Shown: in pieces, positions 954 through 51,384 of the stretch
Numbering within the stretch: the first letter of the stretch is position 1
Layout: each line of letters opens with the position of its first letter
Assembly (NCBI RefSeq): GCF_000143415.4
Contig: NW_003314392.1
Location: forward strand, 96,390 to 160,389
Direction of reading: 5' to 3'
DNA length: 64,000 nucleotides
From: Selaginella moellendorffii
Taxonomy: Eukaryota; Plantae; Lycopodiophyta
Notes under the pieces: generated by a model
The model's input: only the letters and a program-made list of their open reading frames with translations
Database searches by the model: none
What the model was told of the DNA's origin: nothing
Position numbers and translations under genes: made by a program

Positions 954-958
954 AAAAA
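954..958 (-). terminator. Pol III oligo-T terminator (T5), repeated in every unit
   Basis: TTTTT immediately follows the 3' strand of the terminal stem. There is no T4 run inside the predicted RNA. Confidence 0.65.
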
Positions 959-1053
959 GAGGTGGCTCCGGGTGGGTCTCGACCCAGGGACCTATTTGAG
1001 TGGACTTGTTTTTAGATTGGGGGTCTCTGCCACTAGGCCTCTACCACCTCTCC
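954..1053 (-). ncRNA. Candidate Pol III small RNA gene (~92-95 nt, vault-RNA-like architecture), copy 1
   Basis: Minus strand reads (GGA)GAGGTGGTAGAGGCCTAGTGGCAGAGACCCCCAATCTAAAAACAAGTCCACTCAAATAGGTCCCTGGGTCGAGACCCACCCGGAGCCACCTC-TTTTT. It shows box A-like AGGCCTAGTGG (1030-1040), box B-like GGGTCGAGACC (975-985), terminal stem GAGGTGG/CCACCTC and a T5 terminator (954-958). An AT-rich box lies ~20-33 nt upstream. Confidence 0.75.
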
Positions 1054-1072
1054 GTTACATATTTCGTGTCGG

Positions 1073-1083
1073 TTAAATTTATT
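1073..1083 (-). promoter_or_regulatory. TATA-like box upstream of the candidate Pol III gene (repeated in every unit)
   Basis: AATAAATTTAA on the minus strand at about -23 to -33 from the stem start, a rare AT island in a GC-rich unit. Plant Pol III genes commonly carry a TATA-like element here. Confidence 0.5.
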
Positions 1084-1261
1084 GGGTTTGTGGGGGAGGG
1101 GGTTTAACTAGCAAAGGGCGATTATGGGGAGCGCTTAGTGCGATTAAGTGGGGCTTAAGTTGGGGCAATCGCGGCCGTCGGTGCGGTGGGGTGGTTGACC
1201 GGCGGCGATGAGTTTGACCGGCGGTCCCCGTGACACGTGGCTAGGGCTAGGGTCTGGATAT

Positions 1262-1556
1262 GGGTTTTGCGCGAGTGGGCAAGATCCATGGCTCGGTTTG
1301 CGGTGGGACTTGAACCGTTGGAAAGCTTGCGTGAGTCCACCCGTTTCCACAGAAACGGATCTGGATTTCGTCGCTCCACCGGCCCGCACCATTGCGATGG
1401 GTTTGACGCTGGGTTTTCGAGCGAGTGGGCAACATCCATGGCTCGGTTTGCGGTGGGACTTGAACCGTTGGAAAGCTTGCGTGAGTCCACCCGTTTCCAC
1501 AGAAACGGATCCCGATTTCGTTGCTCCACCGTCCCACACCATTGCAATGGGTTTTG
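1262..1556. repeat. Two ~150-bp subrepeats inside each array unit
   Basis: cgagtgggcaa(g/c)atccatggctcggtttgcggtgggacttgaaccgttggaaagc...accattgc(g/a)atgggttt occurs twice, 150 bp apart. Confidence 0.95.
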
Positions 1557-2202
1557 TGCTGTTCCCGTTGCCATATCTCGTGGACCGTGGGCCCCCTTTC
1601 GCCCTTGGGCACATGGGAGCAACTGGGGCGGTGCGCGCAACTGGCCCATGTGGCCAAGTACATTTTTCCATGTCCTGGGCGCCTGCTTTTGTGGTTTTTC
1701 CCACGGAAGAAGATGCGTCCCACGTGGCGATCCGTGTGCCCGCCCGCACTCCGGCACCAACGGGGCCGGCCGGCGTGACGCCCCGGTCGCGGCCGTGCCA
1801 ACGGATCGCGGGCCCCATGCGTGGGCTGCCGCCGGGAGTGCATCTCACTCTCGAGGAAAACACCGCACTGGCGCTCGGGCCTGGACTGGAACGCGACCCC
1901 AGGAGCGCCGTGGCGAAGCCCGCGTCGAGGGCATCGATCCGAATTGGCTGGGCCCCCCATGCCATGCTGGCACCGTGCGTGCCTTGTCGAAAACGGCACA
2001 CCCTTGCGACCGCTGGGCGAAAGGGGCAAACCCCGAGAGGTCCTTGCACCTCCTGTCACTGGGGAGGGTGCCCCCCACGAACACGAACCCAACGGCGCCA
2101 GTCCCACGCGAAACGCACGCACGGTTCGCGAGAAAACGGCCCCCAACGCCCGCATTCTCCATTATTCCGAGAGAATATTCCCTCCACTACTTAAATTGTG
2201 CC

Positions 2203-2302
2203 AAAAAGAGGTGGCTCCGGGTGGGTCTCGACCCAGGGACCTATTTGAGTGGACTTGTTTTTAGATTGGGGGTCTCTGCCACTAGGCCTCTACCACCTCT
2301 CC
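2203..2302 (-). ncRNA. Candidate Pol III small RNA gene, copy 2
   Basis: Same sequence as copy 1. Confidence 0.75.
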
Positions 2303-3450
2303 GTTACATATTTCGTGTCGGTTAAATTTATTGGGTTTGTGGGGGAGGGGGTTTAACTAGCAAAGGGCGATTATGGGGAGCGCTTAGTGCGATTAAGTGG
2401 GGCTTAAGTTGGGGCAATCGCGGCCGTCGGTGCGGTGGGGTGGTTGACCGGCGGCGATGAGTTTGACCGGCGGTCCCCGTGACACGTGGCTAGGGCTAGG
2501 GTCTGGATATGGGTTTTGCGCGAGTGGGCAAGATCCATGGCTCGGTTTGCGGTGGGACTTGAACCGTTGGAAAGCTTGCGTGAGTCCACCCGTTTCCACA
2601 GAAACGGATCTGGATTTCGTCGCTCCACCGGCCCGCACCATTGCGATGGGTTTGACGCTGGGTTTTCGAGCGAGTGGGCAACATCCATGGCTCGGTTTGC
2701 GGTGGGACTTGAACCGTTGGAAAGCTTGCGTGAGTCCACCCGTTTCCACAGAAACGGATCCCGATTTCGTTGCTCCACCGTCCCACACCATTGCAATGGG
2801 TTTTGTGCTGTTCCCGTTGCCATATCTCGTGGACCGTGGGCCCCCTTTCGCCCTTGGGCACATGGGAGCAACTGGGGCGGTGCGCGCAACTGGCCCATGT
2901 GGCCAAGTACATTTTTCCATGTCCTGTGCGCCTGCTTTTGTGGTTTTTCCCACGGAAGAAGATGCGTCCCACGTGGCGATCCGTGTGCCCGCCCGCACTC
3001 CGGCACCAACGGGGCCGGCCGGCGTGACGCCCCGGTCGCGGCCGTGCCAACGGATCGCGGGCCCCATGCGTGGGCTGCCGCCGGGAGTGCATCTCACTCT
3101 CGAGGAAACACCGCACTGGCGCTCGGGCCTGCACTGGAACGCGACCCCAGGAGCGCCGTGGCGAAGCCCGCGTCGAGGGCATCGATCCGAATTGGCTGGG
3201 CCCCCCATGCCATGCTGGCACCGTGCGTGCCTTGTCGAAAACGGCACACCCTTGCGACCGCTGGGCGAAAGGGGCAAACCCCGAGAGGTCCTTGCACCTC
3301 CTGTCACTGGGGAGGGTGCCCCCCACGAACACGAACCCAACGGCGCCAGTCCCACGCGAAACGCACGCACGGTTCGCGAGAAAACGGCCCCCAACGCCCG
3401 CATTCTCCATTATTCCGAGAGAATATTCCCTCCACTACTTAAATTGTGCC

Positions 3451-3550
3451 AAAAAGAGGTGGCTCCGGGTGGGTCTCGACCCAGGGACCTATTTGAGTGG
3501 ACTTGTTTTTAGATTGGGGGTCTCTGCCACTAGGCCTCTACCACCTCTCC
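3451..3550 (-). ncRNA. Candidate Pol III small RNA gene, copy 3
   Basis: Same sequence as copy 1. Confidence 0.75.
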
Positions 3551-4699
3551 GTTACATATTTCGTGTCGGTTAAATTTATTGGGTTTGTGGGGGAGGGGGT
3601 TTAACTAGCAAAGGGCGATTATGGGGAGCGCTTAGTGCGATTAAGTGGGGCTTAAGTTGGGGCAATCGCGGCCGTCGGTGCGGTGGGGTGGTTGACCGGC
3701 GGCGATGAGTTTGACCGGCGGTCCCCGTGACACGTGGCTAGGGCTAGGGTCTGGATATGGGTTTTGCGCGAGTGGGCAAGATCCATGGCTCGGTTTGCGG
3801 TGGGACTTGAACCGTTGGAAAGCTTGCGTGAGTCCACCCGTTTCCACAGAAACGGATCTGGATTTCGTCGCTCCACCGGCCCGCACCATTGCGATGGGTT
3901 TGACGCTGGGTTTTCGAGCGAGTGGGCAACATCCATGGCTCGGTTTGCGGTGGGACTTGAACCGTTGGAAAGCTTGCGTGAGTCCACCCGTTTCCACAGA
4001 AACGGATCCCGATTTCGTTGCTCCACCGTCCCACACCATTGCAATGGGTTTTGTGCTGTTCCCGTTGCCATATCTCGTGGACCGTGGGCCCCCTTTCGCC
4101 CTTGGGCACATGGGAGCAACTGGGGCGGTGCGCGCAACTGGCCCATGTGGCCAAGTACATTTTTCCATGTCCTGGGCGCCTGCTTTTGTGGTTTTTCCCA
4201 CGGAAGAAGATGCGTCCCACGTGGCGATCCGTGTGCCCGCCCGCACTCCGGCACCAACGGGGCCGGCCGGCGTGACGCCCCGGTCGCGGCCGTGCCAACG
4301 GATCGCGGGCCCCATGCGTGGGCTGCCGCCGGGAGTGCATCTCACTCTCGAGGAAAACACCGCACTGGCGCTCGGGCCTGCACTGGAACGCGACCCCAGG
4401 AGCGCCGTGGCGAAGCCCGCGTCGAGGGCATCGATCCGAATTGGCTGGGCCCCCCATGCCATGCTGGCACCGTGCGTGCCTTGTCGAAAACGGCACACCC
4501 TTGCGACCGCTGGGCGAAAGGGGCAAACCCCGAGAGGTCCTTGCACCTCCTGTCACTGGGGAGGGTGCCCCCCACGAACACGAACCCAACGGCGCCAGTC
4601 CCACGCGAAACGCACGCACGGTTCGCGAGAAAACGGCCCCCAACGCCCGCATTCTCCATTATTCCGAGAGAATATTCCCTCCACTACTTAAATTGTGCC

Positions 4700-4799
4700 A
4701 AAAAGAGGTGGCTCCGGGTGGGTCTCGACCCAGGGACCTATTTGAGTGGACTTGTTTTTAGATTGGGGGTCTCTGCCACTAGGCCTCTACCACCTCTCC
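4700..4799 (-). ncRNA. Candidate Pol III small RNA gene, copy 4
   Basis: Same sequence as copy 1. Confidence 0.75.
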
Positions 4800-5948
4800 G
4801 TTACATATTTCGTGTCGGTTAAATTTATTGGGTTTGTGGGGGAGGGGGTTTAACTAGCAAAGGGCGATTATGGGGAGCGCTTAGTGCGATTAAGTGGGGC
4901 TTAAGTTGGGGCAATCGCGGCCGTCGGTGCGGTGGGGTGGTTGACCGGCGGCGATGAGTTTGACCGGCGGTCCCCGTGACACGTGGCTAGGGCTAGGGTC
5001 TGGATATGGGTTTTGCGCGAGTGGGCAAGATCCATGGCTCGGTTTGCGGTGGGACTTGAACCGTTGGAAAGCTTGCGTGAGTCCACCCGTTTCCACAGAA
5101 ACGGATCTGGATTTCGTCGCTCCACCGGCCCGCACCATTGCGATGGGTTTGACGCTGGGTTTTCGAGCGAGTGGGCAACATCCATGGCTCGGTTTGCGGT
5201 GGGACTTGAACCGTTGGAAAGCTTGCGTGAGTCCACCCGTTTCCACAGAAACGGATCCCGATTTCGTTGCTCCACCGTCCCACACCATTGCAATGGGTTT
5301 TGTGCTGTTCCCGTTGCCATATCTCGTGGACCGTGGGCCCCCTTTCGCCCTTGGGCACATGGGAGCAACTGGGGCGGTGCGCGCAACTGGCCCATGTGGC
5401 CAAGTACATTTTTCCATGTCCTGGGCGCCTGCTTTTGTGGTTTTTCCCACGGAAGAAGATGCGTCCCACGTGGCGATCCGTGTGCCCGCCCGCACTCCGG
5501 CACCAACGGGGCCGGCCGGCGTGACGCCCCGGTCGCGGCCGTGCCAACGGATCGCGGGCCCCATGCGTGGGCTGCCGCCGGGAGTGCATCTCACTCTCGA
5601 GGAAAACACCGCACTGGCGCTCGGGCCTGCACTGGAACGCGACCCCAGGAGCGCCGTGGCGAAGCCCGCGTCGAGGGCATCGATCCGAATTGGCTGGGCC
5701 CCCCATGCCATGCTGGCACCGTGCGTGCCTTGTCGAAAACGGCACACCCTTGCGACCGCTGGGCGAAAGGGGCAAACCCCGAGAGGTCCTTGCACCTCCT
5801 GTCACTGGGGAGGGTGCCCCCCACGAACACGAACCCAACGGCGCCAGTCCCACGCGAAACGCACGCACGGTTCGCGAGAAAACGGCCCCCAACGCCCGCA
5901 TTCTCCATTATTCCGAGAGAATATTCCCTCCACTACTTAAATTGTGCC

Positions 5949-6027
5949 AAAAAGAAGGTGGCTCCGGGTGGGTCTCGACCCAGGGACCTATTTGAGTGGA
6001 CTTGTTTTTAGATTGGGGGTCTCTGCC
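5949..6027 (-). ncRNA. Candidate Pol III small RNA gene, copy 5 (cut by assembly gap)
   Basis: Matches copy 1 up to the N run, with one extra A next to the terminator. Confidence 0.6.
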
Positions 6028-6127
6028 NNNNNNNNNNNNNNNNNNNNNNNNNNNNNNNNNNNNNNNNNNNNNNNNNNNNNNNNNNNNNNNNNNNNNNNNN
6101 NNNNNNNNNNNNNNNNNNNNNNNNNNN
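6028..6127. other. Assembly gap (100 N)
   Basis: Exactly 100 N, with array sequence on both sides. Confidence 0.99.
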
Positions 6128-7270
6128 TATTTCGTGTCGGTTAAATTTATTGGGTTTGTGGGGGAGGGGGTTTAACTAGCAAAGGGCGATTATGGGGAGC
6201 GCTTAGTGCGATTAAGTGGGGCTTAAGTTGGGGCAATCGCGGCCGTCGGTGCGGTGGGGTGGTTGACCGGCGGCGATGAGTTTGACCGGCGGTCCCCGTG
6301 ACACGTGGCTAGGGCTAGGGTCTGGATATGGGTTTTGCGCGAGTGGGCAAGATCCATGGCTCGGTTTGCGGTGGGACTTGAACCGTTGGAAAGCTTGCGT
6401 GAGTCCACCCGTTTCCACAGAAACGGATCTGGATTTCGTCGCTCCACCGGCCCGCACCATTGCGATGGGTTTGACGCTGGGTTTTCGAGCGAGTGGGCAA
6501 CATCCATGGCTCGGTTTGCGGTGGGACTTGAACCGTTGGAAAGCTTGCGTGAGTCCACCCGTTTCCACAGAAACGGATCCCGATTTCGTTGCTCCACCGT
6601 CCCACACCATTGCAATGGGTTTTGTGCTGTTCCCGTTGCCATATCTCGTGGACCGTGGGCCCCCTTTCGCCCTTGGGCACATGGGAGCAACTGGGGCGGT
6701 GCGCGCAACTGGCCCATGTGGCCAAGTACATTTTTCCATGTCCTGGGCGCCTGCTTTTGTGGTTTTTCCCACGGAAGAAGATGCGTCCCACGTGGCGATC
6801 CGTGTGCCCGCCCGCACTCCGGCACCAACGGGGCCGGCCGGCGTGACGCCCCGGTCGCGGCCGTGCCAACGGATCGCGGGCCCCATGCGTGGGCTGCCGC
6901 CGGGAGTGCATCTCACTCTCGAGGAAAACACCGCACTGGCGCTCGGGCCTGCACTGGAACGCGACCCCAGGAGCGCCGTGGCGAAGCCCGCGTCGAGGGC
7001 ATCGATCCGAATTGGCTGGGCCCCCCATGCCATGCTGGCACCGTGCGTGCCTTGTCGAAAACGGCACACCCTTGCGACCGCTGGGCGAAAGGGGCAAACC
7101 CCGAGAGGTCCTTGCACCTCCTGTCACTGGGGAGGGTGCCCCCCACGAACACGAACCCAACGGCGCCAGTCCCACGCGAAACGCACGCACGGTTCGCGAG
7201 AAAACGGCCCCCAACGCCCGCATTCTCCATTATTCCGAGAGAATATTCCCTCCACTACTTAAATTGTGCC

Positions 7271-7370
7271 AAAAAGAGGTGGCTCCGGGTGGGTCTCGAC
7301 CCAGGGACCTATTTGAGTGGACTTGTTTTTAGATTGGGGGTCTCTGCCACTAGGCCTCTACCACCTCTCC
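7271..7370 (-). ncRNA. Candidate Pol III small RNA gene, copy 6
   Basis: Same sequence as copy 1. Confidence 0.75.
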
Positions 7371-8519
7371 GTTACATATTTCGTGTCGGTTAAATTTATT
7401 GGGTTTGTGGGGGAGGGGGTTTAACTAGCAAAGGGCGATTATGGGGAGCGCTTAGTGCGATTAAGTGGGGCTTAAGTTGGGGCAATCGCGGCCGTCGGTG
7501 CGGTGGGGTGGTTGACCGGCGGCGATGAGTTTGACCGGCGGTCCCCGTGACACGTGGCTAGGGCTAGGGTCTGGATATGGGTTTTGCGCGAGTGGGCAAG
7601 ATCCATGGCTCGGTTTGCGGTGGGACTTGAACCGTTGGAAAGCTTGCGTGAGTCCACCCGTTTCCACAGAAACGGATCTGGATTTCGTCGCTCCACCGGC
7701 CCGCACCATTGCGATGGGTTTGACGCTGGGTTTTCGAGCGAGTGGGCAACATCCATGGCTCGGTTTGCGGTGGGACTTGAACCGTTGGAAAGCTTGCGTG
7801 AGTCCACCCGTTTCCACAGAAACGGATCCCGATTTCGTTGCTCCACCGTCCCACACCATTGCAATGGGTTTTGTGCTGTTCCCGTTGCCATATCTCGTGG
7901 ACCGTGGGCCCCCTTTCGCCCTTGGGCACATGGGAGCAACTGGGGCGGTGCGCGCAACTGGCCCATGTGGCCAAGTACATTTTTCCATGTCCTGGGCGCC
8001 TGCTTTTGTGGTTTTTCCCACGGAAGAAGATGCGTCCCACGTGGCGATCCGTGTGCCCGCCCGCACTCCGGCACCAACGGGGCCGGCCGGCGTGACGCCC
8101 CGGTCGCGGCCGTGCCAACGGATCGCGGGCCCCATGCGTGGGCTGCCGCCGGGAGTGCATCTCACTCTCGAGGAAAACACCGCACTGGCGCTCGGGCCTG
8201 CACTGGAACGCGACCCCAGGAGCGCCGTGGCGAAGCCCGCGTCGAGGGCATCGATCCGAATTGGCTGGGCCCCCCATGCCATGCTGGCACCGTGCGTGCC
8301 TTGTCGAAAACGGCACACCCTTGCGACCGCTGGGCGAAAGGGGCAAACCCCGAGAGGTCCTTGCACCTCCTGTCACTGGGGAGGGTGCCCCCCACGAACA
8401 CGAACCCAACGGCGCCAGTCCCACGCGAAACGCACGCACGGTTCGCGAGAAAACGGCCCCCAACGCCCGCATTCTCCATTATTCCGAGAGAATATTCCCT
8501 CCACTACTTAAATTGTGCC

Positions 8520-8619
8520 AAAAAGAGGTGGCTCCGGGTGGGTCTCGACCCAGGGACCTATTTGAGTGGACTTGTTTTTAGATTGGGGGTCTCTGCCACT
8601 AGGCCTCTACCACCTCTCC
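8520..8619 (-). ncRNA. Candidate Pol III small RNA gene, copy 7
   Basis: Same sequence as copy 1. Confidence 0.75.
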
Positions 8620-9768
8620 GTTACATATTTCGTGTCGGTTAAATTTATTGGGTTTGTGGGGGAGGGGGTTTAACTAGCAAAGGGCGATTATGGGGAGCGC
8701 TTAGTGCGATTAAGTGGGGCTTAAGTTGGGGCAATCGCGGCCGTCGGTGCGGTGGGGTGGTTGACCGGCGGCGATGAGTTTGACCGGCGGTCCCCGTGAC
8801 ACGTGGCTAGGGCTAGGGTCTGGATATGGGTTTTGCGCGAGTGGGCAAGATCCATGGCTCGGTTTGCGGTGGGACTTGAACCGTTGGAAAGCTTGCGTGA
8901 GTCCACCCGTTTCCACAGAAACGGATCTGGATTTCGTCGCTCCACCGGCCCGCACCATTGCGATGGGTTTGACGCTGGGTTTTCGAGCGAGTGGGCAACA
9001 TCCATGGCTCGGTTTGCGGTGGGACTTGAACCGTTGGAAAGCTTGCGTGAGTCCACCCGTTTCCACAGAAACGGATCCCGATTTCGTTGCTCCACCGTCC
9101 CACACCATTGCAATGGGTTTTGTGCTGTTCCCGTTGCCATATCTCGTGGACCGTGGGCCCCCTTTCGCCCTTGGGCACATGGGAGCAACTGGGGCGGTGC
9201 GCGCAACTGGCCCATGTGGCCAAGTACATTTTTCCATGTCCTGGGCGCCTGCTTTTGTGGTTTTTCCCACGGAAGAAGATGCGTCCCACGTGGCGATCCG
9301 TGTGCCCGCCCGCACTCCGGCACCAACGGGGCCGGCCGGCGTGACGCCCCGGTCGCGGCCGTGCCAACGGATCGCGGGCCCCATGCGTGGGCTGCCGCCG
9401 GGAGTGCATCTCACTCTCGAGGAAAACACCGCACTGGCGCTCGGGCCTGCACTGGAACGCGACCCCAGGAGCGCCGTGGCGAAGCCCGCGTCGAGGGCAT
9501 CGATCCGAATTGGCTGGGCCCCCCATGCCATGCTGGCACCGTGCGTGCCTTGTCGAAAACGGCACACCCTTGCGACCGCTGGGCGAAAGGGGCAAACCCC
9601 GAGAGGTCCTTGCACCTCCTGTCACTGGGGAGGGTGCCCCCCACGAACACGAACCCAACGGCGCCAGTCCCACGCGAAACGCACGCACGGTTCGCGAGAA
9701 AACGGCCCCCAACGCCCGCATTCTCCATTATTCCGAGAGAATATTCCCTCCACTACTTAAATTGTGCC

Positions 9769-9868
9769 AAAAAGAGGTGGCTCCGGGTGGGTCTCGACCC
9801 AGGGACCTATTTGAGTGGACTTGTTTTTAGATTGGGGGTCTCTGCCACTAGGCCTCTACCACCTCTCC
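9769..9868 (-). ncRNA. Candidate Pol III small RNA gene, copy 8
   Basis: Same sequence as copy 1. Confidence 0.75.
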
Positions 9869-11017
9869 GTTACATATTTCGTGTCGGTTAAATTTATTGG
9901 GTTTGTGGGGGAGGGGGTTTAACTAGCAAAGGGCGATTATGGGGAGCGCTTAGTGCGATTAAGTGGGGCTTAAGTTGGGGCAATCGCGGCCGTCGGTGCG
10001 GTGGGGTGGTTGACCGGCGGCGATGAGTTTGACCGGCGGTCCCCGTGACACGTGGCTAGGGCTAGGGTCTGGATATGGGTTTTGCGCGAGTGGGCAAGAT
10101 CCATGGCTCGGTTTGCGGTGGGACTTGAACCGTTGGAAAGCTTGCGTGAGTCCACCCGTTTCCACAGAAACGGATCTGGATTTCGTCGCTCCACCGGCCC
10201 GCACCATTGCGATGGGTTTGACGCTGGGTTTTCGAGCGAGTGGGCAACATCCATGGCTCGGTTTGCGGTGGGACTTGAACCGTTGGAAAGCTTGCGTGAG
10301 TCCACCCGTTTCCACAGAAACGGATCCCGATTTCGTTGCTCCACCGTCCCACACCATTGCAATGGGTTTTGTGCTGTTCCCGTTGCCATATCTCGTGGAC
10401 CGTGGGCCCCCTTTCGCCCTTGGGCACATGGGAGCAACTGGGGCGGTGCGCGCAACTGGCCCATGTGGCCAAGTACATTTTTCCATGTCCTGGGCGCCTG
10501 CTTTTGTGGTTTTTCCCACGGAAGAAGATGCGTCCCACGTGGCGATCCGTGTGCCCGCCCGCACTCCGGCACCAACGGGGCCGGCCGGCGTGACGCCCCG
10601 GTCGCGGCCGTGCCAACGGATCGCGGGCCCCATGCGTGGGCTGCCGCCGGGAGTGCATCTCACTCTCGAGGAAAACACCGCACTGGCGCTCGGGCCTGCA
10701 CTGGAACGCGACCCCAGGAGCGCCGTGGCGAAGCCCGCGTCGAGGGCATCGATCCGAATTGGCTGGGCCCCCCATGCCATGCTGGCACCGTGCGTGCCTT
10801 GTCGAAAACGGCACACCCTTGCGACCGCTGGGCGAAAGGGGCAAACCCCGAGAGGTCCTTGCACCTCCTGTCACTGGGGAGGGTGCCCCCCACGAACACG
10901 AACCCAACGGCGCCAGTCCCACGCGAAACGCACGCACGGTTCGCGAGAAAACGGCCCCCAACGCCCGCATTCTCCATTATTCCGAGAGAATATTCCCTCC
11001 ACTACTTAAATTGTGCC

Positions 11018-12366: not shown

Positions 12367-13515
12367 GTTACATATTTCGTGTCGGTTAAATTTATTGGGT
12401 TTGTGGGGGAGGGGGTTTAACTAGCAAAGGGCGATTATGGGGAGCGCTTAGTGCGATTAAGTGGGGCTTAAGTTGGGGCAATCGCGGCCGTCGGTGCGGT
12501 GGGGTGGTTGACCGGCGGCGATGAGTTTGACCGGCGGTCCCCGTGACACGTGGCTAGGGCTAGGGTCTGGATATGGGTTTTGCGCGAGTGGGCAAGATCC
12601 ATGGCTCGGTTTGCGGTGGGACTTGAACCGTTGGAAAGCTTGCGTGAGTCCACCCGTTTCCACAGAAACGGATCTGGATTTCGTCGCTCCACCGGCCCGC
12701 ACCATTGCGATGGGTTTGACGCTGGGTTTTCGAGCGAGTGGGCAACATCCATGGCTCGGTTTGCGGTGGGACTTGAACCGTTGGAAAGCTTGCGTGAGTC
12801 CACCCGTTTCCACAGAAACGGATCCCGATTTCGTTGCTCCACCGTCCCACACCATTGCAATGGGTTTTGTGCTGTTCCCGTTGCCATATCTCGTGGACCG
12901 TGGGCCCCCTTTCGCCCTTGGGCACATGGGAGCAACTGGGGCGGTGCGCGCAACTGGCCCATGTGGCCAAGTACATTTTTCCATGTCCTGGGCGCCTGCT
13001 TTTGTGGTTTTTCCCACGGAAGAAGATGCGTCCCACGTGGCGATCCGTGTGCCCGCCCGCACTCCGGCACCAACGGGGCCGGCCGGCGTGACGCCCCGGT
13101 CGCGGCCGTGCCAACGGATCGCGGGCCCCATGCGTGGGCTGCCGCCGGGAGTGCATCTCACTCTCGAGGAAAACACCGCACTGGCGCTCGGGCCTGCACT
13201 GGAACGCGACCCCAGGAGCGCCGTGGCGAAGCCCGCGTCGAGGGCATCGATCCGAATTGGCTGGGCCCCCCATGCCATGCTGGCACCGTGCGTGCCTTGT
13301 CGAAAACGGCACACCCTTGCGACCGCTGGGCGAAAGGGGCAAACCCCGAGAGGTCCTTGCACCTCCTGTCACTGGGGAGGGTGCCCCCCACGAACACGAA
13401 CCCAACGGCGCCAGTCCCACGCGAAACGCACGCACGGTTCGCGAGAAAACGGCCCCCAACGCCCGCATTCTCCATTATTCCGAGAGAATATTCCCTCCAC
13501 TACTTAAATTGTGCC

Positions 13516-13615
13516 AAAAAGAGGTGGCTCCGGGTGGGTCTCGACCCAGGGACCTATTTGAGTGGACTTGTTTTTAGATTGGGGGTCTCTGCCACTAGGC
13601 CTCTACCACCTCTCC
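13516..13615 (-). ncRNA. Candidate Pol III small RNA gene, copy 11
   Basis: Same sequence as copy 1. Confidence 0.75.
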
Positions 13616-14764
13616 GTTACATATTTCGTGTCGGTTAAATTTATTGGGTTTGTGGGGGAGGGGGTTTAACTAGCAAAGGGCGATTATGGGGAGCGCTTAG
13701 TGCGATTAAGTGGGGCTTAAGTTGGGGCAATCGCGGCCGTCGGTGCGGTGGGGTGGTTGACCGGCGGCGATGAGTTTGACCGGCGGTCCCCGTGACACGT
13801 GGCTAGGGCTAGGGTCTGGATATGGGTTTTGCGCGAGTGGGCAAGATCCATGGCTCGGTTTGCGGTGGGACTTGAACCGTTGGAAAGCTTGCGTGAGTCC
13901 ACCCGTTTCCACAGAAACGGATCTGGATTTCGTCGCTCCACCGGCCCGCACCATTGCGATGGGTTTGACGCTGGGTTTTCGAGCGAGTGGGCAACATCCA
14001 TGGCTCGGTTTGCGGTGGGACTTGAACCGTTGGAAAGCTTGCGTGAGTCCACCCGTTTCCACAGAAACGGATCCCGATTTCGTTGCTCCACCGTCCCACA
14101 CCATTGCAATGGGTTTTGTGCTGTTCCCGTTGCCATATCTCGTGGACCGTGGGCCCCCTTTCGCCCTTGGGCACATGGGAGCAACTGGGGCGGTGCGCGC
14201 AACTGGCCCATGTGGCCAAGTACATTTTTCCATGTCCTGGGCGCCTGCTTTTGTGGTTTTTCCCACGGAAGAAGATGCGTCCCACGTGGCGATCCGTGTG
14301 CCCGCCCGCACTCCGGCACCAACGGGGCCGGCCGGCGTGACGCCCCGGTCGCGGCCGTGCCAACGGATCGCGGGCCCCATGCGTGGGCTGCCGCCGGGAG
14401 TGCATCTCACTCTCGAGGAAAACACCGCACTGGCGCTCGGGCCTGCACTGGAACGCGACCCCAGGAGCGCCGTGGCGAAGCCCGCGTCGAGGGCATCGAT
14501 CCGAATTGGCTGGGCCCCCCATGCCATGCTGGCACCGTGCGTGCCTTGTCGAAAACGGCACACCCTTGCGACCGCTGGGCGAAAGGGGCAAACCCCGAGA
14601 GGTCCTTGCACCTCCTGTCACTGGGGAGGGTGCCCCCCACGAACACGAACCCAACGGCGCCAGTCCCACGCGAAACGCACGCACGGTTCGCGAGAAAACG
14701 GCCCCCAACGCCCGCATTCTCCATTATTCCGAGAGAATATTCCCTCCACTACTTAAATTGTGCC

Positions 14765-14864
14765 AAAAAGAGGTGGCTCCGGGTGGGTCTCGACCCAGGG
14801 ACCTATTTGAGTGGACTTGTTTTTAGATTGGGGGTCTCTGCCACTAGGCCTCTACCACCTCTCC
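14765..14864 (-). ncRNA. Candidate Pol III small RNA gene, copy 12
   Basis: Same sequence as copy 1. Confidence 0.75.
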
Positions 14865-16013
14865 GTTACATATTTCGTGTCGGTTAAATTTATTGGGTTT
14901 GTGGGGGAGGGGGTTTAACTAGCAAAGGGCGATTATGGGGAGCGCTTAGTGCGATTAAGTGGGGCTTAAGTTGGGGCAATCGCGGCCGTCGGTGCGGTGG
15001 GGTGGTTGACCGGCGGCGATGAGTTTGACCGGCGGTCCCCGTGACACGTGGCTAGGGCTAGGGTCTGGATATGGGTTTTGCGCGAGTGGGCAAGATCCAT
15101 GGCTCGGTTTGCGGTGGGACTTGAACCGTTGGAAAGCTTGCGTGAGTCCACCCGTTTCCACAGAAACGGATCTGGATTTCGTCGCTCCACCGGCCCGCAC
15201 CATTGCGATGGGTTTGACGCTGGGTTTTCGAGCGAGTGGGCAACATCCATGGCTCGGTTTGCGGTGGGACTTGAACCGTTGGAAAGCTTGCGTGAGTCCA
15301 CCCGTTTCCACAGAAACGGATCCCGATTTCGTTGCTCCACCGTCCCACACCATTGCAATGGGTTTTGTGCTGTTCCCGTTGCCATATCTCGTGGACCGTG
15401 GGCCCCCTTTCGCCCTTGGGCACATGGGAGCAACTGGGGCGGTGCGCGCAACTGGCCCATGTGGCCAAGTACATTTTTCCATGTCCTGGGCGCCTGCTTT
15501 TGTGGTTTTTCCCACGGAAGAAGATGCGTCCCACGTGGCGATCCGTGTGCCCGCCCGCACTCCGGCACCAACGGGGCCGGCCGGCGTGACGCCCCGGTCG
15601 CGGCCGTGCCAACGGATCGCGGGCCCCATGCGTGGGCTGCCGCCGGGAGTGCATCTCACTCTCGAGGAAAACACCGCACTGGCGCTCGGGCCTGCACTGG
15701 AACGCGACCCCAGGAGCGCCGTGGCGAAGCCCGCGTCGAGGGCATCGATCCGAATTGGCTGGGCCCCCCATGCCATGCTGGCACCGTGCGTGCCTTGTCG
15801 AAAACGGCACACCCTTGCGACCGCTGGGCGAAAGGGGCAAACCCCGAGAGGTCCTTGCACCTCCTGTCACTGGGGAGGGTGCCCCCCACGAACACGAACC
15901 CAACGGCGCCAGTCCCACGCGAAACGCACGCACGGTTCGCGAGAAAACGGCCCCCAACGCCCGCATTCTCCATTATTCCGAGAGAATATTCCCTCCACTA
16001 CTTAAATTGTGCC

Positions 16014-16113
16014 AAAAAGAGGTGGCTCCGGGTGGGTCTCGACCCAGGGACCTATTTGAGTGGACTTGTTTTTAGATTGGGGGTCTCTGCCACTAGGCCT
16101 CTACCACCTCTCC
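16014..16113 (-). ncRNA. Candidate Pol III small RNA gene, copy 13
   Basis: Same sequence as copy 1. Confidence 0.75.
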
Positions 16114-17262
16114 GTTACATATTTCGTGTCGGTTAAATTTATTGGGTTTGTGGGGGAGGGGGTTTAACTAGCAAAGGGCGATTATGGGGAGCGCTTAGTG
16201 CGATTAAGTGGGGCTTAAGTTGGGGCAATCGCGGCCGTCGGTGCGGTGGGGTGGTTGACCGGCGGCGATGAGTTTGACCGGCGGTCCCCGTGACACGTGG
16301 CTAGGGCTAGGGTCTGGATATGGGTTTTGCGCGAGTGGGCAAGATCCATGGCTCGGTTTGCGGTGGGACTTGAACCGTTGGAAAGCTTGCGTGAGTCCAC
16401 CCGTTTCCACAGAAACGGATCTGGATTTCGTCGCTCCACCGGCCCGCACCATTGCGATGGGTTTGACGCTGGGTTTTCGAGCGAGTGGGCAACATCCATG
16501 GCTCGGTTTGCGGTGGGACTTGAACCGTTGGAAAGCTTGCGTGAGTCCACCCGTTTCCACAGAAACGGATCCCGATTTCGTTGCTCCACCGTCCCACACC
16601 ATTGCAATGGGTTTTGTGCTGTTCCCGTTGCCATATCTCGTGGACCGTGGGCCCCCTTTCGCCCTTGGGCACATGGGAGCAACTGGGGCGGTGCGCGCAA
16701 CTGGCCCATGTGGCCAAGTACATTTTTCCATGTCCTGGGCGCCTGCTTTTGTGGTTTTTCCCACGGAAGAAGATGCGTCCCACGTGGCGATCCGTGTGCC
16801 CGCCCGCACTCCGGCACCAACGGGGCCGGCCGGCGTGACGCCCCGGTCGCGGCCGTGCCAACGGATCGCGGGCCCCATGCGTGGGCTGCCGCCGGGAGTG
16901 CATCTCACTCTCGAGGAAAACACCGCACTGGCGCTCGGGCCTGCACTGGAACGCGACCCCAGGAGCGCCGTGGCGAAGCCCGCGTCGAGGGCATCGATCC
17001 GAATTGGCTGGGCCCCCCATGCCATGCTGGCACCGTGCGTGCCTTGTCGAAAACGGCACACCCTTGCGACCGCTGGGCGAAAGGGGCAAACCCCGAGAGG
17101 TCCTTGCACCTCCTGTCACTGGGGAGGGTGCCCCCCACGAACACGAACCCAACGGCGCCAGTCCCACGCGAAACGCACGCACGGTTCGCGAGAAAACGGC
17201 CCCCAACGCCCGCATTCTCCATTATTCCGAGAGAATATTCCCTCCACTACTTAAATTGTGCC

Positions 17263-17362
17263 AAAAAGAGGTGGCTCCGGGTGGGTCTCGACCCAGGGAC
17301 CTATTTGAGTGGACTTGTTTTTAGATTGGGGGTCTCTGCCACTAGGCCTCTACCACCTCTCC
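17263..17362 (-). ncRNA. Candidate Pol III small RNA gene, copy 14
   Basis: Same sequence as copy 1. Confidence 0.75.
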
Positions 17363-18511
17363 GTTACATATTTCGTGTCGGTTAAATTTATTGGGTTTGT
17401 GGGGGAGGGGGTTTAACTAGCAAAGGGCGATTATGGGGAGCGCTTAGTGCGATTAAGTGGGGCTTAAGTTGGGGCAATCGCGGCCGTCGGTGCGGTGGGG
17501 TGGTTGACCGGCGGCGATGAGTTTGACCGGCGGTCCCCGTGACACGTGGCTAGGGCTAGGGTCTGGATATGGGTTTTGCGCGAGTGGGCAAGATCCATGG
17601 CTCGGTTTGCGGTGGGACTTGAACCGTTGGAAAGCTTGCGTGAGTCCACCCGTTTCCACAGAAACGGATCTGGATTTCGTCGCTCCACCGGCCCGCACCA
17701 TTGCGATGGGTTTGACGCTGGGTTTTCGAGCGAGTGGGCAACATCCATGGCTCGGTTTGCGGTGGGACTTGAACCGTTGGAAAGCTTGCGTGAGTCCACC
17801 CGTTTCCACAGAAACGGATCCCGATTTCGTTGCTCCACCGTCCCACACCATTGCAATGGGTTTTGTGCTGTTCCCGTTGCCATATCTCGTGGACCGTGGG
17901 CCCCCTTTCGCCCTTGGGCACATGGGAGCAACTGGGGCGGTGCGCGCAACTGGCCCATGTGGCCAAGTACATTTTTCCATGTCCTGGGCGCCTGCTTTTG
18001 TGGTTTTTCCCACGGAAGAAGATGCGTCCCACGTGGCGATCCGTGTGCCCGCCCGCACTCCGGCACCAACGGGGCCGGCCGGCGTGACGCCCCGGTCGCG
18101 GCCGTGCCAACGGATCGCGGGCCCCATGCGTGGGCTGCCGCCGGGAGTGCATCTCACTCTCGAGGAAAACACCGCACTGGCGCTCGGGCCTGCACTGGAA
18201 CGCGACCCCAGGAGCGCCGTGGCGAAGCCCGCGTCGAGGGCATCGATCCGAATTGGCTGGGCCCCCCATGCCATGCTGGCACCGTGCGTGCCTTGTCGAA
18301 AACGGCACACCCTTGCGACCGCTGGGCGAAAGGGGCAAACCCCGAGAGGTCCTTGCACCTCCTGTCACTGGGGAGGGTGCCCCCCACGAACACGAACCCA
18401 ACGGCGCCAGTCCCACGCGAAACGCACGCACGGTTCGCGAGAAAACGGCCCCCAACGCCCGCATTCTCCATTATTCCGAGAGAATATTCCCTCCACTACT
18501 TAAATTGTGCC

Positions 18512-18611
18512 AAAAAGAGGTGGCTCCGGGTGGGTCTCGACCCAGGGACCTATTTGAGTGGACTTGTTTTTAGATTGGGGGTCTCTGCCACTAGGCCTCT
18601 ACCACCTCTCC
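18512..18611 (-). ncRNA. Candidate Pol III small RNA gene, copy 15
   Basis: Same sequence as copy 1. Confidence 0.75.
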
Positions 18612-19760
18612 GTTACATATTTCGTGTCGGTTAAATTTATTGGGTTTGTGGGGGAGGGGGTTTAACTAGCAAAGGGCGATTATGGGGAGCGCTTAGTGCG
18701 ATTAAGTGGGGCTTAAGTTGGGGCAATCGCGGCCGTCGGTGCGGTGGGGTGGTTGACCGGCGGCGATGAGTTTGACCGGCGGTCCCCGTGACACGTGGCT
18801 AGGGCTAGGGTCTGGATATGGGTTTTGCGCGAGTGGGCAAGATCCATGGCTCGGTTTGCGGTGGGACTTGAACCGTTGGAAAGCTTGCGTGAGTCCACCC
18901 GTTTCCACAGAAACGGATCTGGATTTCGTCGCTCCACCGGCCCGCACCATTGCGATGGGTTTGACGCTGGGTTTTCGAGCGAGTGGGCAACATCCATGGC
19001 TCGGTTTGCGGTGGGACTTGAACCGTTGGAAAGCTTGCGTGAGTCCACCCGTTTCCACAGAAACGGATCCCGATTTCGTTGCTCCACCGTCCCACACCAT
19101 TGCAATGGGTTTTGTGCTGTTCCCGTTGCCATATCTCGTGGACCGTGGGCCCCCTTTCGCCCTTGGGCACATGGGAGCAACTGGGGCGGTGCGCGCAACT
19201 GGCCCATGTGGCCAAGTACATTTTTCCATGTCCTGGGCGCCTGCTTTTGTGGTTTTTCCCACGGAAGAAGATGCGTCCCACGTGGCGATCCGTGTGCCCG
19301 CCCGCACTCCGGCACCAACGGGGCCGGCCGGCGTGACGCCCCGGTCGCGGCCGTGCCAACGGATCGCGGGCCCCATGCGTGGGCTGCCGCCGGGAGTGCA
19401 TCTCACTCTCGAGGAAAACACCGCACTGGCGCTCGGGCCTGCACTGGAACGCGACCCCAGGAGCGCCGTGGCGAAGCCCGCGTCGAGGGCATCGATCCGA
19501 ATTGGCTGGGCCCCCCATGCCATGCTGGCACCGTGCGTGCCTTGTCGAAAACGGCACACCCTTGCGACCGCTGGGCGAAAGGGGCAAACCCCGAGAGGTC
19601 CTTGCACCTCCTGTCACTGGGGAGGGTGCCCCCCACGAACACGAACCCAACGGCGCCAGTCCCACGCGAAACGCACGCACGGTTCGCGAGAAAACGGCCC
19701 CCAACGCCCGCATTCTCCATTATTCCGAGAGAATATTCCCTCCACTACTTAAATTGTGCC

Positions 19761-19860
19761 AAAAAGAGGTGGCTCCGGGTGGGTCTCGACCCAGGGACCT
19801 ATTTGAGTGGACTTGTTTTTAGATTGGGGGTCTCTGCCACTAGGCCTCTACCACCTCTCC
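19761..19860 (-). ncRNA. Candidate Pol III small RNA gene, copy 16
   Basis: Same sequence as copy 1. Confidence 0.75.
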
Positions 19861-21009
19861 GTTACATATTTCGTGTCGGTTAAATTTATTGGGTTTGTGG
19901 GGGAGGGGGTTTAACTAGCAAAGGGCGATTATGGGGAGCGCTTAGTGCGATTAAGTGGGGCTTAAGTTGGGGCAATCGCGGCCGTCGGTGCGGTGGGGTG
20001 GTTGACCGGCGGCGATGAGTTTGACCGGCGGTCCCCGTGACACGTGGCTAGGGCTAGGGTCTGGATATGGGTTTTGCGCGAGTGGGCAAGATCCATGGCT
20101 CGGTTTGCGGTGGGACTTGAACCGTTGGAAAGCTTGCGTGAGTCCACCCGTTTCCACAGAAACGGATCTGGATTTCGTCGCTCCACCGGCCCGCACCATT
20201 GCGATGGGTTTGACGCTGGGTTTTCGAGCGAGTGGGCAACATCCATGGCTCGGTTTGCGGTGGGACTTGAACCGTTGGAAAGCTTGCGTGAGTCCACCCG
20301 TTTCCACAGAAACGGATCCCGATTTCGTTGCTCCACCGTCCCACACCATTGCAATGGGTTTTGTGCTGTTCCCGTTGCCATATCTCGTGGACCGTGGGCC
20401 CCCTTTCGCCCTTGGGCACATGGGAGCAACTGGGGCGGTGCGCGCAACTGGCCCATGTGGCCAAGTACATTTTTCCATGTCCTGGGCGCCTGCTTTTGTG
20501 GTTTTTCCCACGGAAGAAGATGCGTCCCACGTGGCGATCCGTGTGCCCGCCCGCACTCCGGCACCAACGGGGCCGGCCGGCGTGACGCCCCGGTCGCGGC
20601 CGTGCCAACGGATCGCGGGCCCCATGCGTGGGCTGCCGCCGGGAGTGCATCTCACTCTCGAGGAAAACACCGCACTGGCGCTCGGGCCTGCACTGGAACG
20701 CGACCCCAGGAGCGCCGTGGCGAAGCCCGCGTCGAGGGCATCGATCCGAATTGGCTGGGCCCCCCATGCCATGCTGGCACCGTGCGTGCCTTGTCGAAAA
20801 CGGCACACCCTTGCGACCGCTGGGCGAAAGGGGCAAACCCCGAGAGGTCCTTGCACCTCCTGTCACTGGGGAGGGTGCCCCCCACGAACACGAACCCAAC
20901 GGCGCCAGTCCCACGCGAAACGCACGCACGGTTCGCGAGAAAACGGCCCCCAACGCCCGCATTCTCCATTATTCCGAGAGAATATTCCCTCCACTACTTA
21001 AATTGTGCC

Positions 21010-21109
21010 AAAAAGAGGTGGCTCCGGGTGGGTCTCGACCCAGGGACCTATTTGAGTGGACTTGTTTTTAGATTGGGGGTCTCTGCCACTAGGCCTCTAC
21101 CACCTCTCC
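21010..21109 (-). ncRNA. Candidate Pol III small RNA gene, copy 17
   Basis: Same sequence as copy 1. Confidence 0.75.
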
Positions 21110-22108
21110 GTTACATATTTCGTGTCGGTTAAATTTATTGGGTTTGTGGGGGAGGGGGTTTAACTAGCAAAGGGCGATTATGGGGAGCGCTTAGTGCGAT
21201 TAAGTGGGGCTTAAGTTGGGGCAATCGCGGCCGTCGGTGCGGTGGGGTGGTTGACCGGCGGCGATGAGTTTGACCGGCGGTCCCCGTGACACGTGGCTAG
21301 GGCTAGGGTCTGGATATGGGTTTTGCGCGAGTGGGCAAGATCCATGGCTCGGTTTGCGGTGGGACTTGAACCGTTGGAAAGCTTGCGTGAGTCCACCCGT
21401 TTCCACAGAAACGGATCCCGATTTCGTTGCTCCACCGTCCCACACCATTGCAATGGGTTTTGTGCTGTTCCCGTTGCCATATCTCGTGGACCGTGGGCCC
21501 CCTTTCGCCCTTGGGCACATGGGAGCAACTGGGGCGGTGCGCGCAACTGGCCCATGTGGCCAAGTACATTTTTCCATGTCCTGGGCGCCTGCTTTTGTGG
21601 TTTTTCCCACGGAAGAAGATGCGTCCCACGTGGCGATCCGTGTGCCCGCCCGCACTCCGGCACCAACGGGGCCGGCCGGCGTGACGCCCCGGTCGCGGCC
21701 GTGCCAACGGATCGCGGGCCCCATGCGTGGGCTGCCGCCGGGAGTGCATCTCACTCTCGAGGAAAACACCGCACTGGCGCTCGGGCCTGCACTGGAACGC
21801 GACCCCAGGAGCGCCGTGGCGAAGCCCGCGTCGAGGGCATCGATCCGAATTGGCTGGGCCCCCCATGCCATGCTGGCACCGTGCGTGCCTTGTCGAAAAC
21901 GGCACACCCTTGCGACCGCTGGGCGAAAGGGGCAAACCCCGAGAGGTCCTTGCACCTCCTGTCACTGGGGAGGGTGCCCCCCACGAACACGAACCCAACG
22001 GCGCCAGTCCCACGCGAAACGCACGCACGGTTCGCGAGAAAACGGCCCCCAACGCCCGCATTCTCCATTATTCCGAGAGAATATTCCCTCCACTACTTAA
22101 ATTGTGCC

Positions 22109-22208
22109 AAAAAGAGGTGGCTCCGGGTGGGTCTCGACCCAGGGACCTATTTGAGTGGACTTGTTTTTAGATTGGGGGTCTCTGCCACTAGGCCTCTACC
22201 ACCTCTCC
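22109..22208 (-). ncRNA. Candidate Pol III small RNA gene, copy 18
   Basis: Same sequence as copy 1. Confidence 0.75.
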
Positions 22209-31366: not shown

Positions 31367-31476
31367 TCTCACTTTAGATGAGGGAGATCACCACTAGGTA
31401 GCATGAGCTTTGGGCAGCATGCCCAGTTTTTGTATTAGTCCCTACGGGACATTGGGGAATGTACATACACGTTTCA

Positions 31477-51382: not shown

Positions 51383-51384
51383 TT

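Follow-up and report, generated by a model that had tools for sequence, protein, structure and literature searches.

A tandemly arrayed Pol III-type cassette in Selaginella moellendorffii is a site-specific target of diverged LINE retrotransposons

Introduction

The genome of the lycophyte Selaginella moellendorffii contains a tandem repeat with a unit of 1249 bp, within which lies a short minus-strand cassette with the appearance of a small RNA gene. The question raised by this locus is what the cassette represents. A first-pass annotation, made from the sequence, favoured either a plant vault-like RNA or a tRNA-derived class. Here we address the nature of the cassette through the analysis of a single 64-kb stretch of the genome, referred to as the window.

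Results

Organisation of the array

A BLAST search of the window with the unit located the array in three stretches (Table 1), the largest of which reaches past the left edge of the window and includes an assembly gap. The first-pass annotation had placed the array at 954-22208, where it is indeed found, although it also extends beyond this range. Twelve full units are mutually 100% identical, a degree of identity that assembly polishing may have partly inflated, and the remaining units carry one or two changes; the unit at 21010-22108 lacks one 150-bp subrepeat. Contigs from an independent run (X1) reproduced the unit, including the unit-to-unit joint, without differences. Most units contain no insertion, and the 1.15-kb spacer displayed neither a coding nor an RNA-family signal. 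The tandem array evolves concertedly, and comparison of the units bore out its earlier description as high-copy and homogeneous, with one cassette per monomer. The accompanying statement that every unit has a cassette applies to 17 intact copies; one further copy is cut by the gap, and in two others a retrotransposon insertion has split or truncated the cassette.

The gap removes box A and the 5' strand of the stem from one cassette copy. Its left flank stops at unit position 78 and its right flank restarts at position 107, and thus the missing sequence amounts to 28 nt, to which any number of whole units may have to be added. The phase across the gap is compatible with an uninterrupted array. 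The cut copy has one additional A (AAAAAGAAGG) beside the contig end.

Table 1. Positions of the array, cassette and retroelement features in the window
Feature	Position	Strand	Remarks
Main array block	1-23203	.	Located by anchor spacing, unit comparison and a BLAST search with the unit
Representative cassette, unit 1	954-1052	-	RNA sense runs 1052 to 954
Intact cassettes 1-9 (plus-strand starts)	954, 2203, 3451, 4700, 7271, 8520, 9769, 11018, 12267	-
Intact cassettes 10-17 (plus-strand starts)	13516, 14765, 16014, 17263, 18512, 19761, 21010, 22109	-
AT box AATAAATTTAA	1073-1083	-	~21-31 nt 5' to the G (1052) that opens the terminal stem region
Box A-like AGGCCTAGTGG	1030-1040	-	RNA nt 13-23
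Box B-like GGGTCGAGACC	975-985	-	RNA nt 68-78
T5 run, Pol III terminator-like	954-958	-	Directly 3' of the 3' strand of the terminal stem
16-bp insertion site TCGACCCAGGGACCTA	979-994	+	RNA nt 59-74; overlaps the first 7 nt of box B
Gap-truncated cassette copy	5950-6127	-	N at 6028-6127; unit positions 79-106 missing
LINE-A copy 1	23204-31476	+	APE, RT and zf-RVT; frames broken
Non-coding 1.7-kb element	31511-33188	+	Followed by the 16-mer (33189-33204), then the rest of the cassette
Single array unit between two insertion clusters	33189-34453	.	Spans one insertion site to the next; 99.7% identity to the unit
LINE-A copy 2	34454-42620	+	8167 bp; 16-mer at both flanks
Last array fragment	42621-43466	.	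About unit positions 26-871, from the cassette AAAAA; array ends at 43466
Isolated cassette fragment	61974-62034	+ (sense)	RNA nt ~14-74; outside the array, joined to LINE-B at the 16-mer
LINE-B, 3' part	62035-64000	-	Runs past the window edge

Architecture and folding of the cassette

The 17 intact cassettes, which are about 95-99 nt in length and near-identical wherever they were compared, contain box A-like and box B-like elements, are preceded by an AT box and end in a T5 run. The distance from box A to box B is 55 nt and that from box B to the T5 run 16 nt, with no T4 run inside the cassette. The consensus of box B is GGTTCGANNCC, from which the box B-like sequence of the cassette differs at one position. 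The box A-like and box B-like sequences each returned 19 matches, all on the minus strand and at 1249-bp spacing, where 0.03 and 0.07 matches, respectively, were expected by chance. A degenerate regular expression (box A, 25-65 nt, box B, 5-40 nt, TTTT) matched precisely the 17 intact cassettes and nothing in 300 Markov shuffles of the 31.8 kb of non-redundant window sequence. The motif counts and the shuffle test support both the type-2 Pol III architecture with a terminal panhandle and the tRNA-derived class put forward by the first-pass annotation. At the level of sequence, a tRNA-derived origin of the cassette is supported, a chance pattern is disfavoured, and every signal of a small Pol III gene is present.

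Computed folding of the cassette RNA yielded a robust terminal stem of 7-10 bp with a pairing probability of ~1.0, in which 959-965 pairs with 1044-1050 (GAGGUGG/CCACCUC). While this part of the structure proposed earlier is firm, the two inner helices that accompanied it are possible but account for ~4% of the ensemble. The fold that contains them has an energy of -31.8 kcal/mol, compared with -32.1 kcal/mol for the minimum free energy structure, which has other inner pairs, and is one among several folds of equal energy. As a whole the cassette folds weakly better than shuffled sequences (z = -1.9). Extra nucleotides separate a T-arm-like hairpin from the terminal stem.

Relationship to known RNA families

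Searches of Rfam at the gathering threshold, a check that the first-pass annotation had proposed for Vault, tRNA and Y RNA, returned no match to these or to any other family, and no family was matched at E<=10 by one unit or by the cassette alone. ARAGORN identified no tRNA, cloverleaf or anticodon arm in the cassette which, as the Rfam tRNA model was also unmatched, was rejected as a tRNA gene. With respect to vault RNA (RF00006; ~90-100 nt), the cassette is similar in its length of ~95 nt, its type-2 promoter elements (internal box A and box B), its oligo-T terminator and the panhandle formed by its 5' and 3' ends; in addition, its box B ends in TCGAGACCC, which is the end that the first-pass annotation gave for animal vault RNAs. 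The likeness, however, is limited to promoter boxes of the tRNA type, which are common to any tRNA-derived unit, and the Vault covariance model was unmatched at any threshold tried. The compensatory change cited in favour of a vault RNA was based on the vault sequence given by the first-pass annotation and on the disfavoured inner helices, and is not supported. Furthermore, the cassette occurs in at least 17 arrayed copies with a 1.15-kb spacer, and vaults are reported to have probably been lost in plants, where the few MVP-like sequences are suspected contaminants (PMC3762200). The vault RNA label was thus rejected, and an orthologue packaged in plant vault particles is so improbable that it carries almost no weight. 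Judged on these searches, the cassette is a putative Pol III unit that has lost the cloverleaf and belongs neither with the tRNA genes nor with the vault RNA genes.

Expression

Sampled 31-mers of the cassette were absent from 11 RNA assemblies. Three raw RNA-seq runs contained no cassette reads, in a comparison that had no positive control and with standard libraries losing RNAs of ~95 nt. None of five sampled cassette 31-mers was shared by any listed run from another organism, which is likewise weak evidence. Clustered tDNAs of Arabidopsis are silent though their Pol III cis-elements are kept (PMC7544208), and by analogy the cassette is most likely silent or weakly expressed.

Retrotransposon insertions at box B

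The window contains four retroelement copies, namely two of LINE-A, one of LINE-B and the non-coding element, and each of them abuts the 16-bp insertion site at its 3' end. When the junctions were read base by base and aligned, the 16-mer was invariant in six of six sequences. The cassette is a nucleotide-precise target that a non-autonomous element shares with two diverged lineages of LINEs, a specificity based on four junctions in one 64-kb window. Such site-specific targeting, which did not feature in the first-pass annotation, is the clearest property of the cassette.

LINE-A copy 1 has its 5' junction in the spacer, with ~195 bp of the unit missing, and abuts the 16-mer (31477-31492) at its 3' end. 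A second, degenerate 16-mer (31495-31510) precedes the non-coding element. LINE-A copy 2 contains open reading frames of 1202 aa, 1115 aa (APE+RT) and 427 aa (zf-RVT). The 16-mer is duplicated around this copy (34438-34453 and 42621-42636), and thus a single cassette is split between box B and box A. LINE-B shares 62-66% amino-acid identity with the LINE-A ORF2 (~35-38% protein difference). Over its last 54 nt, a stretch that includes the 16-mer, LINE-B matches the end of the non-coding element exactly, while the remainder of the element is not shared. The isolated cassette fragment to which LINE-B is joined is bordered on the opposite side by a DUF7869-type transposon copy. LINE-A, LINE-B and the non-coding element are all antisense to the cassette, and co-transcription with the cassette unit is therefore impossible. 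The nearest database protein is a S. moellendorffii LINE protein (90-92% identity), and L004, the only further family member examined, is 3'-truncated and gives no information on the target. Among the papers listed by one full-text search, none dealt with sequence-specific LINEs in Selaginella.

Discussion

We give an even chance to the explanation that the cassette is a Pol III-type unit of tRNA origin which lies in a homogenised array, is probably silent or expressed at a low level, and acts as a safe haven for LINEs. Should the 16-mer represent a target-site duplication, the sense strand of the cassette would be nicked first, inside box B. Integration would regenerate the site, and because of this elements could stack, as may have occurred when LINE-A copy 1 inserted next to the non-coding element. 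Homing may be aided by read-through transcripts that include cassette sequence from further downstream; the LINE-B copy has 45 extra cassette nucleotides. The common specificity of two old LINE lineages suggests a far greater age for the site than units of near-100% identity would imply, and the uniformity of the array may be maintained by unequal exchange or gene conversion, as with rDNA for R1/R2. The unit looks competent for transcription and would yield a panhandle RNA of ~92-95 nt ending in U4-5, although silence or weak expression, as in the clustered tRNA genes of Arabidopsis, is most likely; the demonstrable role of the cassette would be that of a safe-haven target for retrotransposons.

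Two features sit uneasily with this explanation. The boxes, the terminator and the perfect stem of 7-10 bp are kept while the interior has diverged beyond tRNA recognition, a pattern that resembles selection on an expressed RNA, and long-term targeting by two LINE lineages is typical of functional multicopy genes. Both would be expected of a genuine lineage-specific family of Pol III non-coding RNA genes, which we regard as possible though clearly less probable. Such genes would encode a tRNA-derived panhandle RNA acting as a stable RNP component, in the manner of vault, Y or BC1-type RNAs. Their arrayed arrangement would resemble that of 5S or snRNA genes, and dedicated LINEs would parasitise them in the way that R1/R2 parasitise rDNA. 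The complete promoter and terminator geometry, uninterrupted by a T4 run, is consistent with such a family, as are the presence of one gene per concertedly evolving unit, the predominance of insertion-free units and the long persistence of the target indicated by a site common to LINE lineages at 62-66% identity. The failure to detect the transcript, or its sampled 31-mers in the listed runs from other organisms, counts weakly against it. A fold barely above that of shuffles and an ambiguous inner structure also count against it. Furthermore, clustered plant tRNA genes can be silent despite intact promoters (PMC7544208), and non-genic repeats are also LINE targets (PMC4640811).

Two further readings were also weighed. 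An inert satellite, with the tRNA-like segment a relic preserved by chance and the uniformity and copy number partly products of assembly, is unlikely. The runs of 100% identical units and the gap within the array do suggest assembler trouble, and a spacer with neither coding nor RNA-family signal is in keeping with a satellite, but the independent run reproduces the unit and its tandem joint, the combination of motifs is far beyond chance and the LINE data point to long-term stability of the site. Still less likely is a tandem retroelement derived from a small-RNA gene. This could be a tRNA-derived SINE that was amplified along with its flank, or a TRIM of the Helenus/Cassandra type, each unit consisting of an LTR, with the tRNA-like Pol III unit, and an internal domain. 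The TRIMs Cassandra (5S) and Helenus (tRNA) are likewise repeats that harbour the Pol III promoter and terminator of a small-RNA gene, long tandem arrays are formed by Cassandra, and the cassette with its immediate flanks starts with TGT and ends with ACA; moreover, the Helenus family is present in S. moellendorffii (PMC10886601). The 1249-bp unit, however, contains no detectable tRNA-iMet primer-binding site anywhere and no purine tract upstream of the TG, whereas Helenus-1_SMo measures 205 bp (LTR plus internal domain) and its LTR differs by inspection, save for generic tRNA motifs. SINEs of tRNA origin and tRNA-derived small RNAs such as BC1 resemble the cassette in that their head, with its A and B boxes, descends from a tRNA and has lost the tRNA fold, but the cassette has neither a sense-oriented LINE-derived tail nor an A-rich or simple-repeat tail. 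The 16-mer common to the LINE tails is oriented opposite to what a shared SINE/LINE tail requires, and no dispersed copies with target-site duplications occur in the window, the sole copy outside the array being the fragment at LINE-B.

The preferred explanation, a largely silent Pol III-type unit used as a LINE target, has parallels in two known systems. Like the cassette array, the tDNA clusters of Arabidopsis consist of tandem type-2 Pol III units with well-kept cis-elements, and their silence fits the absence of cassette reads (PMC7544208); the cassette differs in that it encodes no tRNA and has extra nucleotides beside the T-arm-like hairpin. Site-specific non-LTR elements target multicopy RNA genes, tRNA genes, transposons and simple repeats (PMC4640811). 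As with R1/R2 in rDNA, the array described here is homogenised and multicopy, LINEs occupy a single precise position in a minority of its units, that position is used by several diverged lineages, and a non-autonomous passenger exploits the LINE tail. In contrast to R1/R2 systems, the array occurs in a lycophyte, its target sequence belongs to no recognised RNA gene, and the elements are oriented antisense to the putative transcription unit.

The tandem array and its tRNA-like cassette

The left end of the window falls inside a tandem array of a 1249-bp unit, whose anchor motifs repeat every 1249 bp from 954 to 22109. Comparison of the unit with the window by BLAST delimits three array blocks, 1-23203, 33189-34453 and 42621-43466. 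Twelve full units are mutually 100% identical, with no more than one or two changes in each of the others. At 21010-22108 the unit is 1099 bp in length and contains one copy of a 150-bp subrepeat that is present twice in the others, providing evidence of unequal exchange within the unit. The ORFs of the unit spacer matched no Pfam family.

Each unit contains a cassette of ∼95 nt on the minus strand, the features of which, together with those of the elements described below, are listed in the table. In a type-2 Pol III unit box A is located near +13, box B lies 30-60 nt downstream and a terminator of at least T4 follows soon after, with no internal T4; the sequence of the cassette displays this arrangement. 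A degenerate regular expression joining box A, box B and T4 matched 17/17 intact cassettes and nothing else in the window; the same expression returned no match in 300 shuffles of the 31.8 kb of non-redundant sequence. These data indicate that chance does not account for the pattern, whose origin is a tRNA-type Pol III gene. The terminal stem of the cassette is certain in the folding ensemble; the boxes, T5 run and terminal stem described in the first-pass annotation were all borne out. The two inner helices proposed in the same annotation are energetically plausible, in a structure only 0.3 kcal/mol above the minimum free energy, but they make up only ∼4% of the ensemble. In the minimum free energy structure (−32.1 kcal/mol) box A is paired to the central region, and the fold of the whole cassette has a z score of only −1.9 against shuffles. 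Inspection of the cassette revealed a T-arm-like hairpin with a 6-nt loop, from which one T is missing, and 8 extra nt between this hairpin and the terminal stem; no anticodon arm was evident.

Features of the cassette and of the elements joined to it
Feature	Position	Strand	Details
AT box	1083-1073	-	AATAAATTTAA; unit 1
Start of RNA region	from 1052	-	GAGAGGUGG; unit 1
Box A-like	RNA nt 13-23	-	AGGCCTAGTGG
Box B-like	RNA nt 68-78	-	GGGTCGAGACC
3' stem strand	immediately 5' of T5 run	-	CCACCUC
T5	958-954; RNA nt 95-99	-
Assembly gap	6028-6127		N letters
LINE-A copy 1	3' end at 16-mer 31477-31492		directly upstream of non-coding element
Non-coding element	31511-33188		1.7 kb; ends at 16-mer 33189-33204, then rest of cassette
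LINE-A copy 2	34454-42620		between TCGACCCAGGGACCTA copies 34438-34453 and 42621-42636
LINE-B	62035-64000	-	ends at 16-mer, then 45 more cassette nt; outside array

Retroelement junctions at a single 16-mer

LINE-A is an 8-kb element that encodes APE, RT and zf-RVT domains, and two copies of it, which are 97.7% identical, break the array. LINE-B displays 62-66% amino-acid identity with LINE-A. The 3' junctions of both LINE-A copies, LINE-B and a non-coding passenger element are located, within the 64-kb window, at an identical 16-mer that is unchanged at every junction, and one of the four copies is flanked by the 16-mer on both sides. That all four fall on one nucleotide of a unit of 1249 bp is no coincidence, and independent copies joined to the same target nucleotide are what is expected of a sequence-specific non-LTR retrotransposon. 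All of the elements are antisense to the cassette. The insertion site, at RNA nt 59-74, extends into box B, and in one cassette box B and box A are separated by LINE-A copy 2. The 5' junction of LINE-A copy 1 lies in the spacer, where ∼195 bp of the unit are missing. The elements also resemble each other next to the site. LINE-A and LINE-B have ∼50 nt of conserved tail in common, and LINE-B is identical to the non-coding element over the last 54 nt ahead of the remaining cassette sequence, made up of ∼38 nt of tail and the 16-mer.

The position of LINE-A copy 1 beside the non-coding element is expected if every insertion restores the site, which then receives a further element. The stacked insertions at 31477-33204 suggest re-use of the duplicated site. 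The order across this region is the end of LINE-A copy 1, the 16-mer, 'cc' followed by a degenerate copy (tagacccagggaccta), the passenger, the 16-mer and the remainder of the cassette.

LINE-A and LINE-B differ in more than one third of their ORF2 residues yet share the insertion site, implying that the site is far older than would be judged from units that are nearly identical. On this reasoning the array would be homogenised, not young.

The 5' regions of the two LINE-A copies are dissimilar. Copy 2 begins with ∼4.7 copies of a 22-bp repeat, CCGCTACCGACGGCGGATGCCCC (34454-34553), while copy 1 lacks this repeat and instead contains 132 nt of unrelated sequence with an A-rich start (23204-23337). 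The first ORF of LINE-A (23239-26844; 34408-38016) encodes ∼1200 aa and has no Pfam match. A length of ∼1200 aa is unusually great for the ORF1 of a LINE.

Neighbouring transposons

Two partial copies of a transposon encoding a DUF7869 protein, 96-100% identical over ∼2 kb, are present at 43936-45591 (-) and 58273-60348 (-), with the associated repeats at 45174-47348 and 58476-61972. The isolated cassette fragment and LINE-B start at the very point where the second copy stops. For the repeat that ends at 61972, an LTR identity was considered, in which its insertion would have cut a full cassette. This was rejected, as the repeat begins inside the ORFs of the DUF7869-type transposon and is thus a second copy of the transposon. 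Either LINE-B, carrying 45 nt of read-through cassette sequence, inserted into the DUF7869 transposon, or LINE-B landed in a solitary cassette that was cut by the transposon. A young LTR element occupies 50238-57399. Its LTRs (50238-51382 and 56255-57399) are 1145 bp in length and 99.9% identical, and a tRNA-iMet-type primer-binding site (PBS), TGGTATCAGAGG, is located at 51385-51396, two bases past the 5' LTR.

Relatives of the LINEs and of the repeat

The database protein nearest to LINE-A is P0001 from S. moellendorffii, at 90-92% identity, which independently supports the assignment of the window to this species. Searches with the C-terminal ORF and the RT region of the LINEs identified P0001 as the sole close relative, all others displaying ≤44% identity. 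The corresponding locus (L004, 9821-12771) is LOC112341605 on scaffold GL377652.1, which is 91.6% identical to LINE-A. This LINE copy is truncated at both its 5' and 3' ends, is annotated as a protein gene and runs into unrelated AT-rich DNA. No cassette was found at the locus. A 362-aa spurious ORF that spans the satellite, used in a protein search as a proxy for DNA homology, had no match. A metagenome scan for box A-gap-box B returned three matches, which were dismissed as chance occurrences in GC-rich bacterial contigs. Among the papers listed by a full-text literature search that included the genus, none described sequence-specific LINEs in Selaginella, and the titles and abstracts listed by another search contained no description of this 1249-bp repeat.

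Transcription data

In the run index, where the runs listed bore one organism label alone, seven runs contain the cassette, and all seven also contain nearly the whole unit. Eleven RNA assemblies under the same label contained 0.00 of the sampled cassette words. One run marked 'RNA?' contains the whole unit at flat depth, tandem joint included, and thus looks like DNA. Three raw RNA-seq runs (∼9.2 million records each, searched without a positive control) yielded no reads on the full unit. RNA-seq libraries of this type lose RNAs of ∼95 nt. These data show that the unit gives rise to no abundant transcript of the polyadenylated or read-through kind, and have little bearing on a Pol III product.

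Identity of the cassette

The first-pass annotation had viewed the cassette as a vault-RNA-like gene. Vault RNAs likewise contain internal A and B boxes, an oligo-T terminator and a panhandle formed by the 5' and 3' ends; these features, however, are common to any tRNA-derived Pol III unit and thus do not discriminate in favour of vault RNA. The Vault covariance model, RF00006, was not matched by the window at the gathering score, nor at E≤10 by a single unit or by the 119-nt cassette in isolation, and neither the unit nor the cassette matched the Rfam tRNA, tRNA-Sec or Y RNA models or any other family. Vaults are reported to have probably been lost in the plant lineage (PMC3762200). It is extremely improbable that the cassette encodes a vault RNA, and the attractive claim of a 'plant vault RNA' is here corrected as unsupported. 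With respect to tRNA genes, ARAGORN identified none; the calls made when introns were allowed and thresholds lowered were spurious and lay on the strand opposite to the cassette. Derivation of the array from a TRIM or a SINE appears very unlikely. A TRIM of the Helenus/Cassandra type was rejected, as the unit contains no TGGTATCAGAGC-like tRNA-iMet PBS with ≤2 mismatches, the tRNA-iMet PBS being the only type tested, and no purine tract was found upstream of the cassette on the sense strand. Helenus-1_SMo is, similarly, a tRNA-derived element of S. moellendorffii; inspection showed that its published LTR shares only generic tRNA motifs with the cassette. Dispersed copies with target-site duplications would be expected of a SINE; no dispersed copy was found in the 64 kb or at locus L004, and the sole cassette fragment outside the array within the window is joined to LINE-B. 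Furthermore, the 16-mer common to the LINE tails is antisense, in contrast to the sense tail expected of a tRNA-derived SINE.

It is improbable, if somewhat less so, that the array is an inert satellite relic whose uniformity stems partly from assembly. At the assembly gap the sequence breaks off at unit position 78 on the left and is taken up again at 107 on the right, so that the absent part measures 28 nt, with or without additional whole units. The gap cassette thereby lacks box A as well as the 5' strand of its stem, and at the contig end the cassette copy to the left carries a single additional A. The phase of the gap is compatible with an uninterrupted array, and contigs from an independent public run match the unit without differences, the unit-to-unit joint included. 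The LINE data speak for persistence of the site and not for function. Clusters of plant tRNA genes can retain their Pol III elements and yet be silent (PMC7544208). The reading that we favour, to which we assign about an even chance, is that the cassette is a Pol III-type unit of tRNA origin that lies in a homogenised array, is probably either silent or expressed at a low level, and has as its demonstrable role that of a safe haven for retrotransposons. A real, lineage-specific family of Pol III RNA genes is a possibility that we hold only tentatively. The cassette would then encode a novel tRNA-derived panhandle RNA of ∼95 nt, specific to lycophytes and transcribed by Pol III from a concertedly evolving multigene array with its own long-established guild of site-specific LINEs and a passenger. 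If such an RNA exists, its class would be new among the Pol III transcripts of plants, in a 5S/snRNA-like arrangement.

Comparison with known site-specific systems

The site-specific LINE system is newly recognised in this window. It reveals nucleotide-precise target specificity in a lycophyte, exhibited at a site within a tRNA-like repeat by LINEs of two diverged lineages as well as by a non-autonomous element, and offers a natural system in which to explore how an APE-type LINE reads its target and how an array survives repeated insertion. Site-specific systems are well known for the rDNA, snRNA, tRNA and spliced-leader genes of animals and protists. The targets of published site-specific non-LTR elements comprise multicopy RNA genes, tRNA genes, transposons and simple repeats (PMC4640811), a range that can be read both for and against a functional gene here. 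A homogenised array with LINEs that share one site follows the same logic as rDNA and its R elements and, were the cassette indeed to encode a Pol III RNA, the system would represent a plant counterpart of rDNA and R1/R2 on a new small RNA gene.
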